64,000 bases of DNA from sequence record OP991903.1; one strand, given 5' to 3'. A model generated the notes under the pieces. That model ran no database searches. It saw nothing but the letters and a program-made list of their open reading frames with translations, and was not told where the DNA came from. Shown here one piece after another: positions 53,932 through 58,439 of the stretch; position 1 is the first letter of the stretch, and every line of letters starts with the position of its first letter. The position numbers and the translations under genes are program-made.

Positions 53932-54015
53932 ATGATTAACACGGGATGTTTGACACTGTCACCACCGTTGTTATTTATCACCATATCCGTGGGAAACGTA
54001 CACTGCACTCCTTAA
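53932..54015 (+). CDS. possible 27-aa peptide
   Basis: MINTGCLTLSPPLLFITISVGNVHCTP with AAGGA RBS in a long intergenic gap. Confidence 0.3.
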   Translation: MINTGCLTLSPPLLFITISVGNVHCTP

Positions 54016-54128
54016 AGTCATTTTTTACGGAGTCGATTGGACTTATGTAGTTAAGTGGAAGCTAAAACTCTATTCACCTGCACCCAATACGGATATGAAC
54101 TCAATCACTGTATTAAGGAGTCTCGACA

Positions 54129-54563
54129 ATGTCAATGAACAGCATTACTGAGCGCGTCCTAACTGCACATGAACGTGGGTTCACCGATGACATGATTTCG
54201 GCCTACGAAGGTGTACCAGTTGATGACGTCAAAGCGGTTATCGAAACTTTCAACGAACCATCTGTCCCCGGCAACGTAAGGGATATTCAAATCCATCGCC
54301 AGGCTCAACGTTTTCTGGACCGTCACGACCTTGAAGAAATCACCTCAAGAATTGACGACCACCGGACGAACGCGTTAGCGGATAACACTAACCCAGAGCT
54401 GGAAGCCGTTACCGGTTTAGTCGACCAATATCGACTGGACCCTGAAGTGGCAACGGAAGTCTTTGCCGATGTCTCTCGTCGCCGTCGCGTCGTGGACCTG
54501 GAGCAAGAAGACCGTGTCATGCGCAACCGTGGTCGTGTTGAGCGTACCTGGGCCGCGCGCTAA
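54129..54563 (+). CDS. hypothetical protein, HTH-like N-terminus
   Basis: 144 aa, AAGGAG RBS, TAC-N15-TATG upstream. Confidence 0.7.
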   Translation: MSMNSITERVLTAHERGFTDDMISAYEGVPVDDVKAVIETFNEPSVPGNVRDIQIHRQAQRFLDRHDLEEITSRIDDHRTNALADNTNPELEAVTGLVDQYRLDPEVATEVFADVSRRRRVVDLEQEDRVMRNRGRVERTWAAR

Positions 54564-54577
54564 GTGAAGAATGGTCG

Positions 54578-54626
54578 TAGGTAGGGTGGCCTTCGGGCTA
54601 CTCTGCCTCGGCTGTCTTTTTTATTT
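54578..54626 (+). terminator. intrinsic terminator
   Basis: GGTAGGGTGGCC-TTCG-GGCTACTCTGCC plus T run. Confidence 0.6.
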
Positions 54627-54637
54627 TCATTGGAGGA

Positions 54638-54994
54638 ATGATGGACGAAGAAGAGAATTGGCTCGACCCGTTAAAAGATGCGATTAAAAACGGGGAGAAA
54701 GGCCCATTCGTTATTGACCCTAAGGAACGGAAGGTGGTCGTTCTTGGGGCTGGGATGGGGAGTATTGGTGGGGCGTTGCTCAGGGAAATGCGTCACAGTC
54801 AAGGGCTCTTCCCCAATACTGAGGAGTATGCCCGGGGTTTACGCAGCAAGGTCGAGAACTTAGACTGTATTGCTGAACTAGGTTCGCCGGTAGAAGGTAA
54901 GCGTTTACGTAGTGATGGCCGTCGCGAACTGATGATGAACAACGCCGGGACTATGGCCTGGCCTGCACCCAAACAACGCAGAGGAAGAAGATAA
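54638..54994 (+). CDS. hypothetical protein with shared C-terminal NxxGT motif (1 of 4)
   Basis: Ends RRELMMNNAGTMAWPAPKQRRGRR. Confidence 0.75.
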   Translation: MMDEEENWLDPLKDAIKNGEKGPFVIDPKERKVVVLGAGMGSIGGALLREMRHSQGLFPNTEEYARGLRSKVENLDCIAELGSPVEGKRLRSDGRRELMMNNAGTMAWPAPKQRRGRR

Positions 54995-55869
54995 TGGAAA
55001 AGAAAGATAAAGGCGTATCGTTGAATATTGGTTCACTCAACGTTCCTAATCGCAATGGGGTAAGCTACTCGCCCGACGCAATAGAAGCGGCGCTAGAGCG
55101 GGCTCTCGATGGCAGTAAGGTCTCCGCCAACGCAGCACTGTTCCCCAACGGTCAGATTCCTAACTTCGCCCAATTCCTGAAAATGATTGCGCCGCATCTT
55201 AGTGAAGAGAAGATTCGCATGATGGCTGAGATGGCCGAACGGATGCCAGACTACCCTGACATCGCCGCTAAACATCACCATGGTCAGGAACTCTTTGACC
55301 GCATTAAAGCACGGATGGCCAATGAACCGGCGGGCTTCAAGGTTCTTACGATGCGGGCACCGACCCCGACAGACTGGAATAAAGAATTTGACGAGTTAGG
55401 CTTGGGTCGTAAAGAAGCCGACGTCGAAATCAGTATCTCGCCGCGTATGATTGACGGACAGGTTGTCTCGTACGGCGTTGTGAAAAGTCGTCAGGGTCAC
55501 CCCGATGCACTGAACGTTGAGATTGACTCTTTACCTAACTGGTTGCGTGACGTCGACCTGCCACTGGACCCCATTGACCGGGACGTTCAATGTCAGTACC
55601 TGAACGAGATTAGACCCAACGAACCAAGTGCGCGTCTAAAGCGCTCGCTTGATAAACTTGACGGTGGGGTGAAGGCGGTAACGTTGGATATCCCTGACCC
55701 CTTCGGTTCCAGTCCTGGTTGCCGTAGTCTACTTAACACCTTCGGTTCAGCGCGTCAACGGGTCAATGGTGACATCACGGTGAACGGCAAACAACGCAAG
55801 GAGTTGGTTACCAATGCCAAAGGGACGATGGTCTTCCCACGAGCAAAACAAAAGTTCGGTCGTCGATAA
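54994..55869 (+). CDS. hypothetical protein with protease-like N-motif and shared C-terminal motif (2 of 4)
   Basis: Ends RKELVTNAKGTMVFPRAKQKFGRR; N-terminal IGSLNVPNRNGVSY. Confidence 0.8.
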   Translation: MEKKDKGVSLNIGSLNVPNRNGVSYSPDAIEAALERALDGSKVSANAALFPNGQIPNFAQFLKMIAPHLSEEKIRMMAEMAERMPDYPDIAAKHHHGQELFDRIKARMANEPAGFKVLTMRAPTPTDWNKEFDELGLGRKEADVEISISPRMIDGQVVSYGVVKSRQGHPDALNVEIDSLPNWLRDVDLPLDPIDRDVQCQYLNEIRPNEPSARLKRSLDKLDGGVKAVTLDIPDPFGSSPGCRSLLNTFGSARQRVNGDITVNGKQRKELVTNAKGTMVFPRAKQKFGRR

Positions 55870-56098
55870 GAAACTGATACTCGACGCCATCGAATATATG
55901 TCGATGTCGGAGGTTATTGAACTTATCTCGGCTATTGAAGAAAAGCAATCGAAGGAGGAAAAGATGAGCTTTGTATGGTTAGGTAAAAAAGACAAGATGC
56001 CGCAGAACTCCCGGCGTCATTATCAAACGAATCCGGATGGGACATTCGCCTACCCGGTACCAGACCGCAAGAAGGGGCACCGTAAACATGGAAAATAA
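55814..56098 (+). CDS. bL12 (L7/L12) N-terminal-domain-containing protein with shared C-terminal motif (3 of 4)
   Basis: DKKLILDAIEYMSMSEVIELISAIEEK vs E. coli bL12 [27 protein letters not shown] (14/27 identical); AAGGAG RBS at 55798; internal in-frame start at 55964. Confidence 0.7.
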   Translation: MPKGRWSSHEQNKSSVVDKKLILDAIEYMSMSEVIELISAIEEKQSKEEKMSFVWLGKKDKMPQNSRRHYQTNPDGTFAYPVPDRKKGHRKHGK

Positions 56099-56333
56099 AG
56101 AAGAGCATTTACCACTTACCACCCTCACCACTGAGAAGGGTCCAGACCCGGTGAGCGACAAGGTAAAGCAGGTGGCGAACCAGTTAGTGCAGCGTTATGT
56201 GCGCCAGCAAAAACTGGAGGAACAGGCTAAAAAGGACCCCATGTTCAACCTACGGGTGGCGCTACTGCGCGGAAACCCTAACCGTTCGAACGGTACCAGC
56301 TGGAATCTTCCGGGTAAGAAACGGCGGTGGTAA
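56088..56333 (+). CDS. hypothetical protein with related basic C-terminal motif (4 of 4)
   Basis: ATG 56088; ends NRSNGTSWNLPGKKRRW. Confidence 0.65.
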   Translation: MENKEEHLPLTTLTTEKGPDPVSDKVKQVANQLVQRYVRQQKLEEQAKKDPMFNLRVALLRGNPNRSNGTSWNLPGKKRRW

Positions 56334-56398
56334 CCGCCTTTATCCGTCCCATCGGGAACTCAATTCCCTAACCCAATCATTTTTTAAGTGCGGTACTC

Positions 56399-56677
56399 AT
56401 GTCTGTGAATAACTTTGACTATCAGGAAGTGGAAGAGATAATTGATTTCCTCTCAACCATCACCCTCTGTTATCATTTTAATAATGGTAATGCTCGGAAA
56501 ATAAAGAAGTGCGCGCGCTCCATGAAAGCACGATTCACTCGCCGTACTCCGAGACGTTACTGCGATAAAATAATAGAGGAGCCTGAGGATGCGTTCTTCA
56601 TCATTAACACAATTAGCAGCGGTCACTTTAACGTTCTGGCCCTGCGCGATTCTTCAAAGCAATTCCTATCCGTTTAA
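56399..56677 (+). CDS. hypothetical protein
   Basis: 92 aa. Confidence 0.6.
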   Translation: MSVNNFDYQEVEEIIDFLSTITLCYHFNNGNARKIKKCARSMKARFTRRTPRRYCDKIIEEPEDAFFIINTISSGHFNVLALRDSSKQFLSV

Positions 56678-56710
56678 GTATAATCCCGTACCCATCTCAG
56701 GGGGTCCACC

Positions 56711-57676
56711 GTGAATAACTTTTTTGTATTTTATCACGCACTGTGCATCGACGGATTTTCCGCCGCTGCAACTTTGTGGCGTGCGTTACCGAGCGCAACT
56801 TACCGACCAGTCCACTATAACTCCCCGCTGCCGTTAGAAGGAGTTGGCCAGGGCGATACGCTGTACTTCGTTGATTTTGCACCACCGCCTGAGGAAATCA
56901 GTAACCTCGCGAAGTTAGAGCCTGCTCGCGTTGTTATCCTCGACCATCATGCGTCAATGGTTGACGCGTATGCAAAAGCGGACTGCCCAGAGTTTCAAGC
57001 CGTGCTCCGTGCTGCTAATGTTGAGCTGACATTAGACGGAACACGTTCTGGTGCAGGGTTGACCTGGGCGCATCTGTACCCGGACACACCGCTCCCCTAT
57101 GTACTCGCTTGTGTACAAGACCGTGACCTCTGGCAGTTCAAACTTCCAGACTCGCGGGACTTCTACGAGTTCTTCATCCTTTTCCTCAACAAACCGTTCT
57201 CTGAGTTCAACCGTTTAATCGACGATGTTGGCGTGGTTAACGACGGTGTCTTCTCCTCGACCATGGGTGCCACGGCATACCTCGGCGTGAAAGAAGCCTC
57301 AGAAGCGTTGAAGGAAAAACGAGATGTCGAGATTCAATTCCACCTCGATAACTGTCTGACCGAATGGCCGTTTGGCGATTCAGGTAAGATGGCTGTCGTG
57401 AACTGTCACCGCCCTATTACCTCGGAACTTTGCGACCGCATCAAAGATTCATATGACGTGGTTGCTTGTTATTTCCATCGTAAAATGGGGTCGATGGTTT
57501 CACTGCGTTCAAAAGACTATAACGTCCGCTTTCTGGCTGAGAAGCTGGGCGGGGGTGGTCATGCGAACGCGGCAGGTGTGGAGCTGTTTTTCGCCATTAC
57601 GCCGGAAACACTTGCTGCCATGCTCTTCGATGCTAACAAAGAACTTCATGCTGCAAGTGAGGCTGAGAATGGATGA
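56711..57676 (+). CDS. DHH/DHHA1 family phosphoesterase
   Basis: YH..CIDG..AA, VDF, LDHH, SLRS, GGGHANAAG. Confidence 0.9.
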   Translation: MNNFFVFYHALCIDGFSAAATLWRALPSATYRPVHYNSPLPLEGVGQGDTLYFVDFAPPPEEISNLAKLEPARVVILDHHASMVDAYAKADCPEFQAVLRAANVELTLDGTRSGAGLTWAHLYPDTPLPYVLACVQDRDLWQFKLPDSRDFYEFFILFLNKPFSEFNRLIDDVGVVNDGVFSSTMGATAYLGVKEASEALKEKRDVEIQFHLDNCLTEWPFGDSGKMAVVNCHRPITSELCDRIKDSYDVVACYFHRKMGSMVSLRSKDYNVRFLAEKLGGGGHANAAGVELFFAITPETLAAMLFDANKELHAASEAENG

Positions 57677-58172
57677 AATCTCTGGGGCACCATCACTGTT
57701 AAAGATGTGTGGCATCAGTATGGAATCACGCTACCTGGAAAAGGTGGTGGATTTCAACTATAGCGTCAATGACGATTTGGGAGGTACGGCGTCGATTGAT
57801 TTGCGCGACGTGTCCTGCATCTCTGTCAATAAGCAACGTAAAGGGAACTTGTGGGTGCTGAACTTCGGTCCACGGAGCAAGGCGAACAATTCCATTTGCA
57901 TGTACTATAAAAGCGAAATGGCGACAGAGCTGGTACGTTCGACCATGTCTGCTGAGAAGAAGCGTCAAATTGAACACGACGAGGCAGCCTATGCAAACCT
58001 TAGTATCCCGGTTGAACCAGTGCAAGCAATCCCTGCAACACTGGCTGAAGAAAATCACGACCCGCGTTTCGATGGAGAAAGTCATCCGCGTGGAAACGGC
58101 TACTGGCGTGTACTTCTTCGACGCTTGTTCGGTCGTGTCCGTGAGCGAACCCACAATGAGCGGGTTGACTAA
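57669..58172 (+). CDS. hypothetical protein
   Basis: Start ATG 57669 coupled to DHH gene. Confidence 0.6.
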   Translation: MDEISGAPSLLKMCGISMESRYLEKVVDFNYSVNDDLGGTASIDLRDVSCISVNKQRKGNLWVLNFGPRSKANNSICMYYKSEMATELVRSTMSAEKKRQIEHDEAAYANLSIPVEPVQAIPATLAEENHDPRFDGESHPRGNGYWRVLLRRLFGRVRERTHNERVD

Positions 58173-58365: not shown

Positions 58366-58394
58366 GAAGGAGCTTCGGCTCCTTCTTTTTTTTT
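58366..58394 (+). terminator. intrinsic terminator
   Basis: GAAGGAGC-TTCG-GCTCCTTC plus T run. Confidence 0.8.
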
Positions 58395-58405
58395 GTTTCA
58401 AACGG

Positions 58406-58439
58406 GCATAAAGGAGGGCGAAAGCCCTCCTTTTTTTTT
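58406..58439. terminator. bidirectional terminator
   Basis: GCATAAAGGAGGGC-GAAA-GCCCTCCTTTTTTTT. Confidence 0.8.

Follow-up and report, generated by a model that had tools for sequence, protein, structure and literature searches.

A bL12 N-terminal-domain-like hairpin joined to a near-invariant basic tail in a small gene of an Erwinia jumbo phage

Results

Erwinia jumbo phage vB_Ea277G (OP991903.1; 218.5 kb, genus Iapetusvirus, phiKZ-like), whose host is the fire-blight bacterium, carries a small gene, gp3, encoding a hypothetical protein of 94 residues on the + strand of the window, the whole stretch of 64,000 nucleotides (nt) that we analyzed and whose coordinates are those of the record. 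We conclude from sequence comparison that gp3 residues 17–45 are a copy of the two-helix N-terminal domain of enterobacterial-type bL12, and we consider both this homology and the resulting architecture, a bL12-like hairpin followed by a basic tail, to be highly probable. Judged by its conservation, the tail rather than the bL12 piece is the core of the protein, and two products are expected from the gene: a 94-residue fusion initiated at ATG 55814 and a 44-residue peptide initiated at ATG 55964. An earlier note on this stretch had read gp3 as a possible hijacker of the ribosomal stalk. That interpretation is partly supported: the architecture holds, the nested isoform is strongly supported, and the emphasis shifts to the tail.

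Residues 17–45 of gp3 match the N-terminal domain of bL12

A phmmer search of the PDB aligned gp3 residues 18–44 with Escherichia coli bL12 residues 3–29 (14 of 27 identical, E 0.023), the same count that the earlier note had reported, at correct coordinates (nt 55865–55945). Residues 17–45 pair with bL12 residues 3–31 without gaps at 48% identity. The top Pfam match of gp3 is Ribosomal_L12_N (PF16320), the family that the earlier note had proposed as a check, although the score lies below the curated gathering cut-off (E 0.0055, 16.8 bits versus 25). Three of four orthologs match the same family, with a best E-value of 2.8e-4, and the NCBIfam L12 model (TIGR00855) matches one ortholog only (P0002, E 0.036). 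A profile built from the four orthologs improved the PDB search roughly thousandfold (E 3.4e-5), and bL12 filled its top ten places, each time aligned from the extreme N-terminus and in one register, with enterobacterial bL12 scoring above bL12 of Mycoplasma and Thermotoga. Alignment by hhalign to 16 enterobacterial bL12 sequences placed residues 17–45 onto 3–31 over 29 columns (probability 94.5%, P 7.4e-8), and none of 50,000 shuffles attained the ungapped score against bL12. Because the likeness strengthens when relatives are added, unlike chance matches, we regard it as more than chance.

The predicted structure is of the same kind. AlphaFold2 places helices at residues 19–27 and 31–50, with a predicted local distance difference test score (pLDDT) of about 90 for residues 21–40, and predicts the tail to be disordered. 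The hairpin segment is acidic (isoelectric point (pI) 4.5), and the hydrophobic pattern of the phage hairpins is nearly identical to that of bL12. Neither Pfam nor NCBIfam gave a match to the hinge or C-terminal domain (Ribosomal_L12, PF00542) in gp3 or its orthologs; the true bL12 proteins that we examined all contain both an N-terminal and a C-terminal domain, whereas gp3 after residue 45 is basic tail (pI 10.5). The claim of an N-terminal-domain-only fusion to a basic tail, with hinge and C-terminal domain absent, therefore stands. Because these parts are absent and the Pfam threshold is unmet, our searches indicate that gp3 is not a bL12 but a module derived from the bL12 N-terminal domain in a new setting. 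The phage orthologs share 9–15 of 29 residues with bL12 and, across clades, 7–16 of 29 with each other. A need to match host partners could produce this pattern, as could independent divergence after a bL12 copy had been captured.

The hairpin appears to be translated and maintained

The ratio of nonsynonymous to synonymous differences per site (pN/pS) divides gp3 into three regions: 1.5–3.3 for residues 1–17, 0.5–0.67 for residues 18–54, and 0.01–0.09 for residues 55–94, where pS reaches up to 0.78. Because values of 0.5–0.67 are not decisive, we used a neutral null model, in which the observed number of random substitutions was applied to one ortholog and the result was scored, by ungapped BLOSUM62, against Salmonella bL12 (L010:595-960). 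A run was counted if the frame stayed open and the score reached that of the other ortholog, in six comparisons of 5000 runs each. The orthologs differ at 31–41 of 87 nt in the hairpin segment and nevertheless score 60–79 against bL12. Neutral runs had mean scores of 0–18 and a maximum of 54 and gained a stop in 48–70% of cases; in all six comparisons, not one of the 5000 runs attained the observed score. Helix 1 alone (residues 17–28, upstream of Met29) gave p ≤ 0.02 in all six. The sole indel among the long-form orthologs, those with a full-length gp3, is in frame.

Because the neutral model never reaches the observed score, we conclude that both hairpin helices are translated and kept bL12-like. 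Initiation must then lie before residue 17; a stop occupies 55781–55783, and ATG 55814 is the only start codon that follows it in this frame. Use of the 55964 start alone, an outcome that the earlier note had allowed for, is thus not what we find, both helices being kept bL12-like under selection.

Two nested products are expected from gp3

The long form has its own initiation signals. AAGGAG and ATG 55814 are retained in every long-form ortholog, with an anti-Shine–Dalgarno duplex of about −8 kcal/mol (−8.0), and relatives at 91, 71, and 60% protein identity (P0001, P0002 from L004, and P0004 from L003, respectively) have an open reading frame (ORF) of 93–94 residues with an identical 56-nt overlap with gp2. 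Contig L013 and an identical IMG/VR contig also carry the long form; scanning metagenome contigs with the gp3 alignment found no relatives. We judge from the selection pattern that the first 16 residues, for which pLDDT is below 50, are an unconstrained by-product of the overlap with the upstream gene. A frameshift fusion of gp2 and gp3 was considered and dropped, since the conserved ATG and ribosome-binding site account for the long form, though no search was made for a slippery site.

The internal AAGGAGG and in-frame ATG 55964 that the earlier note had pointed out are located as it described. A sequence resembling a ribosome-binding site before the equivalent codon is kept in seven of seven relatives, including two in which it serves the sole start. 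In the long-form relatives, the duplex at this site is −6 to −12 kcal/mol, and the start codon is ATG in four cases and GTG in one. Because the site and an ATG or GTG are kept in all long-form relatives, the nested 44-residue product is very likely made in vB_Ea277G as well; the proposal of a tail-only isoform is strongly supported by two relatives that encode this same peptide as a gene of its own.

The RefSeq ortholog of phage PhiEaH1 (CF95_gp091, YP_009010144.1, L002:4899-5099) begins at Met29, giving 66 residues and losing helix 1. The selection and start-site analyses indicate that this call is too short and that the 94-residue call in OP991903.1 is right.

One lineage lacks the hairpin

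Relatives without the hairpin were located by searching with gp2 and then reading the contigs. Two sister relatives (L011 and L012) lack the bL12-like segment: the interval that runs from the gp2 stop to the internal ribosome-binding site is missing about 80 nt. Here gp3 is a 44-residue tail gene (L012:1694-1828) with its own ribosome-binding site, and its Met matches Met51 of gp3 (55964). Conservation of the segment in relatives, on which the earlier note had made its reading depend, therefore holds in all relatives found except these two. In L011 a changed codon pair has removed the upstream ATG; that a tail-only relative lacks it agrees with the ATG being retained in other relatives because the long form needs it. 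The two ends of the gap (L011:5773-5782 and L012:1677-1693 against window 55870–55951) share 3 nt of microhomology, the pattern that a simple deletion would leave.

Identities of the DHH phosphoesterase gene, gp1, gp2, gp4, and the following gene place L004 and L013 as the outgroup and L011 and L012 as sisters. Because of this branching, we conclude that the hairpin is ancestral in the group and was lost once; read with the selection results, it is under selection where present and dispensable.

The basic tail defines a family of hyperconserved C-termini

In four orthologs that are otherwise 60–91% identical, 38 of the last 40 gp3 columns are invariant. Many synonymous DNA changes fall within the same stretch; synonymous sites vary freely, and we thus ruled out an RNA-level explanation of the conservation. 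Paralogous tails terminate gp1 and gp2, where they are also near-invariant, on bodies of 39–66% identity. Among six gp1 orthologs, the tail is near-invariant and the N-terminal part is 43–66% identical, with indels; among nine gp2 orthologs, the body is 39–64% identical and 23 of the last 33 columns are invariant. A local tail hidden Markov model (HMM) scores 73–78 bits for gp1, gp2, and gp3 and matches nothing else in the 218-kb genome. Alignment of nine tails yields invariant columns R13, N19, G22, T23, P27, and G34 (numbering of the first row). The tails of gp2 and gp1 are more basic (pI 11.6–12.0) than that of gp3.

Searching the tail profile against Pfam and the PDB gave chance-level matches only (for example, a copper nitrite reductase loop at E 0.5). 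Among 1.84 billion representatives, a profile search found about 15 true tail members, all of them small proteins that end in the tail and whose N-terminal parts are unrecognizable; the contigs of these distant proteins are short and their context is uninformative. Separately, gp039 of the Kosakonia jumbo phage Kc263 (254 kb, Branisovskavirus; 337 residues, L018:2071-3084) ends in a degenerate tail (HMM 16.8 bits).

The N-terminal parts of gp1 and gp2 gave weaker signals. That of gp1 contains a conserved Gly-rich strand–loop–helix, and a six-ortholog profile found weak PDB matches only (E 0.18–2), all at the very N-terminus of Rossmann-type dehydrogenases or TrkA; gp1 may be a second case of an N-terminal piece of a cellular protein joined to the tail. 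For gp2, Pfam and PDB searches, including a profile search, gave no match, and the AlphaFold2 model was unusable (pLDDT 39). Residues 16–44 of gp2 match the PHROG “head maturation protease” weakly (E 0.059), and this N-terminal piece is absent from the L003 ortholog.

The gp3 locus lies in a compact gene block

The four genes gp1 to gp4 are tightly coupled, with overlaps of 1 nt (gp1/gp2), 56 nt (gp2/gp3), and 11 nt (gp3/gp4); positions are collected in Table 1. The basic C-terminal stretch of gp4 resembles the tail, and the tail HMM gives no match to gp4. Downstream in the same block are a DUF7740 protein (56399–56677, E 9e-10) and a DHH/DHHA1 phosphoesterase (56711–57676, DHHA1 E 3.7e-7), the latter far better conserved among relatives (67–92% identity) than gp1–gp4. 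Two strong hairpins followed by T-runs, resembling intrinsic terminators (58366–58385 and 58410–58433), end the + strand block before convergent genes; the block thus adjoins virion structural genes on the opposite strand.

Table 1. Features of gp3 and of the adjoining genes, in coordinates of the window (CDS, coding sequence)
Feature	Position	Strand	Basis
gp1, 117 residues: variable N-terminal part and first tail copy (about 54884–54991)	54641–54994	+	Annotated CDS; tail HMM, 78 bits
gp2, 291 residues: variable body and second tail copy (about 55768–55866)	54994–55869	+	Annotated CDS; tail HMM; nine orthologs
AAGGAG ribosome-binding site of the long isoform, 10 nt upstream of ATG 55814, within gp2 tail codons	55798–55803	+	Sequence
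gp3 long isoform, 94 residues (WBF04754.1)	55814–56098	+	Annotated hypothetical protein: N-terminal extension, bL12 N-terminal-domain-like hairpin, basic tail
gp3 residues 1–16, N-terminal extension (gp2 tail codons in another frame)	55814–55861	+	pN/pS 1.5–3.3
gp3 residues 17–45, bL12 N-terminal-domain-like helix-turn-helix	55862–55948	+	Homology, AlphaFold2, null models
Internal AAGGAGG ribosome-binding site, 5 nt before in-frame ATG 55964	55952–55958	+	Duplex −11.7 kcal/mol
Predicted tail-only isoform, 44 residues, pI 10.5	55964–56098	+	Start homologous in position to the separate 44-residue gene of L012 and L011
Hyperconserved tail core, gp3 residues 55–94	55976–56095	+	38 of 40 columns invariant in four orthologs
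gp4, 81 residues: next gene of the coupled block, with its own conserved basic C-terminal end	56088–56333	+	Annotated CDS

Over region 54000–58000 the DNA is 99.3% identical to that of Erwinia phage PhiEaH1. vB_Ea277G encodes a tail sheath protein like phiKZ gp29PR and the divergent family B DNA polymerase of phiKZ-like phages, and a tubulin-like protein is annotated in its genome. PhiEaH1 is listed among the nearest relatives of the nucleus-forming Serratia phage PCH45 (10.1101/782524). In vB_Ea277G, chimallin was not identified (two candidate genes were checked, both without a PDB match), and “nucleus-forming” is accordingly context taken from relatives rather than a result.

Discussion

Possible docking of the gp3 hairpin on the ribosomal stalk

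bL12 dimerizes through its N-terminal domain, which also attaches it to helix alpha-8 of uL10, and bL12 copies exchange on the uL10 sites. The gp3 hairpin could accordingly pair with itself or with host bL12, and the resulting dimers would occupy uL10 sites of the stalk. Docking would set the basic tail beside the GTPase-associated center; a slot occupied without a C-terminal domain would lower or bias recruitment of IF2, EF-Tu, EF-G, and RF3, while the tail would bind its own target, a very conserved one that is probably ribosomal RNA (rRNA), with greater avidity. The tail alone may act without the anchor, which would explain loss of the anchor in one lineage. We find docking plausible because of what is known of the stalk and of viral ribosomal proteins: the C-terminal helix of uL10 anchors bL12 dimers via their N-terminal domains, and without this contact the factors no longer bind (PMC6146381); the IF2 and EF-G steps slow down when ribosomes have lost one bL12 dimer (PMC3299993); and easily exchangeable ribosomal proteins are favored among those encoded by viruses, one phage bL12-domain protein having been detected by mass spectrometry in E. 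coli ribosome preparations (PMC6375957). Even so, we hold docking of the hairpin on the host stalk only tentatively, at somewhat below an even chance. The fuller reading, in which a viral mimic of the stalk anchor replaces or pairs with host bL12 on uL10 and the tail of gp1–gp3 is a new family of ribosome- or rRNA-binding peptides, strikes us as rather unlikely.

Several observations weigh against the stalk reading. The hairpin was deleted in the L011/L012 lineage while the remainder of the block was kept, and therefore any stalk function is dispensable. Selection on the hairpin is moderate (pN/pS 0.5–0.67), the Pfam match is under the curated threshold in every ortholog, and a Foldseek search of the PDB with the gp3 model returned no matches, the hairpin being too small and the remainder disordered. 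Docking could be hindered by the 16 extra residues at the N-terminus, and a purely self-dimerizing hairpin would yield the same sequence evidence. Finally, nothing links the tail itself to ribosomes, and the tail has no Pfam or PDB match.

Alternative explanations

The self-dimerizing hairpin is itself the main rival reading: a small module that doubles the valency of the tail, with a target that is not ribosomal (nucleic acid of phage or host, or a conserved factor of some other kind) and a bL12 likeness that reflects origin only. The bL12 N-terminal domain is primarily a dimerization domain, as the name of its Pfam family states, and loss of the hairpin is tolerated; the tail occurs alone and on unrelated N-terminal parts (gp1, gp2, and P0020–P0032), implying that its function is independent of bL12; and bL12 would also sit at the center of the ortholog cloud if a captured copy had diverged independently. 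A self-pairing module should be free to drift, yet all lineages keep the hydrophobic pattern and 9–15 of 29 bL12 identities, a weak argument that leaves this explanation, to our minds, unlikely but in serious contention. We give a lower probability, and call improbable, the idea that the tail is an address label on three cargoes, for capsid packaging or as an import or docking signal for a phage replication compartment, with the short gp3 as a free competitor or regulator. That one C-terminal tail is found on three different N-terminal parts speaks for it, as do the adjoining virion structural genes, the relatedness of this phiKZ-like phage to nucleus-forming PCH45, the tubulin-like protein, and the selective import of proteins by nucleus-forming phiKZ-like phages (PMC12908238). 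Labels, however, are rarely invariant across 33–40 residues, a stand-alone label of 44 residues without cargo is hard to explain, and chimallin was not identified among the two candidate genes. To our knowledge, moreover, the import signals so far described for such phages are not linear tails.

A further proposal, which we find slightly less credible still, is that only the 44-residue peptide matters and that the bL12-like part is a functionless translated leftover from an old capture of the rplL 5′ end. A tail-only gene suffices in L011 and L012, of the two ribosome-binding sites the internal one is the stronger (−11.7 versus −8.0 kcal/mol), and constraint on residues 18–54 is weak. A functionless segment would decay, however, and the neutral simulations never retain the likeness and usually gain stops; no long-form relative has lost the upstream start codon or its ribosome-binding site, and the sole relative without the ATG is tail-only. 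It is also conceivable, though purely speculative and in our view quite improbable, that the tails are cis-acting nascent-chain peptides of the arrest type that tune the overlapping downstream genes from within the exit tunnel, with the N-terminal parts as sensors. Their 33–40 conserved residues equal the length of chain that the tunnel is known to hold, conservation is at the amino-acid rather than the nucleotide level, each tail-coding end overlaps or abuts the next start, and the partner would be extremely conserved. The last few residues, by contrast, vary more between paralogs than the core 10–20 residues upstream, free variation at synonymous sites gives no hint of an RNA switch, and we know of no precedent for three tandem arrest peptides. 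The least probable account, by now largely refuted, is that a generic amphipathic helix matches bL12 by chance or that the segment is noncoding. It could draw on the marginal single-sequence E-values (0.0055 in Pfam and 0.023 in the PDB), on a reciprocal tblastn E-value of only 2, and on the shorter PhiEaH1 gene in RefSeq, but it is at odds with the thousandfold gain on adding orthologs, the hhalign probability, the ten top PDB matches that are all bL12 in register, the shuffle and neutral tests that never reached the observed score, and the in-frame indel.

Significance

The bL12 pieces so far described in phages are the factor-binding end, whereas gp3 is an anchor-only copy on a near-invariant basic peptide, which suggests a different strategy, of a phage that occupies the stalk rather than supplying it. 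If stalk docking is true, then gp3 would be a natural means of altering the make-up of the stalk in vivo, a way to learn how initiation and elongation are tuned by the number of bL12 C-terminal domains, and a second, mechanistically distinct case of ribosome targeting by phiKZ-type phages. Whatever the mechanism, the analysis adds a new hyperconserved tail family, a clear case of two nested products in one small gene, and a corrected start for the RefSeq PhiEaH1 ortholog.

Comparison with known systems

With the bL12 N-terminal domain (PF16320), gp3 shares the ungapped match of 17–45 to 3–31, the hydrophobic pattern, the predicted helix-turn-helix, and the acidic character of the segment. It differs in lacking the hinge and C-terminal domain, in having a 16-residue N-terminal extension and a basic C-terminal end, in scoring below the Pfam threshold, and in being phage-encoded, from a gene outside an rplJL operon. 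A reciprocal tblastn search with the bL12 N-terminus recovered the gp3 locus from 50,697 phage records and found among them no other case of an N-terminal-domain-only bL12, and our literature search found no paper that pairs Ribosomal_L12_N with a phage. Other apparent N-terminal matches in these records were rejected, as they were bacterial rplJ–rplL contigs under phage names or lay outside any ORF. Complete bacterial rplL genes occur in H16/H17 (Acinetobacter phage MD-2021a) and H15 (Salmonella phage S.Kent 1-2-1), and a complete rplJ–rplL pair occurs in L017 (OR844998.1); bacterial contigs have probably entered the phage collection here, rather than phages that encode bL12.

The phage bL12 domains known to date are of the C-terminal, factor-binding type, some as whole proteins and more often within larger ones, frequently non-ribosomal polypeptides (Mizuno et al. 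2019, PMC6375957), so that the earlier note was right that phage homologs are known, though as C-terminal-domain pieces and not as the N-terminal domain alone. These domains occur in genomes of less than 80 kb, are under purifying selection, and have homologs in related phages without the domain; the described C-terminal domain has residues that contact uL11, EF-G, and EF-Tu (PMC6375957). gp3 is alike in being a bL12 piece in a phage, under purifying selection and missing from some relatives, and unlike in being the opposite, anchor end, with the C-terminal domain absent, in a 218-kb phiKZ-like phage.

PhiKZ014, an early phiKZ protein, binds the 50S subunit and clamps 5S rRNA at the central protuberance with a fold of its own (PMC10914614). 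Both proteins come from phiKZ-type jumbo phages, and the 50S targeting shown for PhiKZ014 would have a counterpart in the ribosome binding that we infer for gp3; unlike gp3, PhiKZ014 is no mimic of a ribosomal protein. The two share no PHROG or Pfam family and no Foldseek match, from searches that did not include a direct comparison with the PhiKZ014 sequence.

A mycobacteriophage homolog of bL9 keeps the N-terminal domain and has the C-terminal domain replaced by unrelated sequence (PMC6375957). Although this is another ribosomal protein, with a site on rRNA rather than on uL10, and neither a conserved tail family nor a dual start has been described for it, it is the closest parallel in design to gp3: in both, the ribosome-binding N-terminal end of an exchangeable protein is kept and the functional C-terminal domain is replaced.

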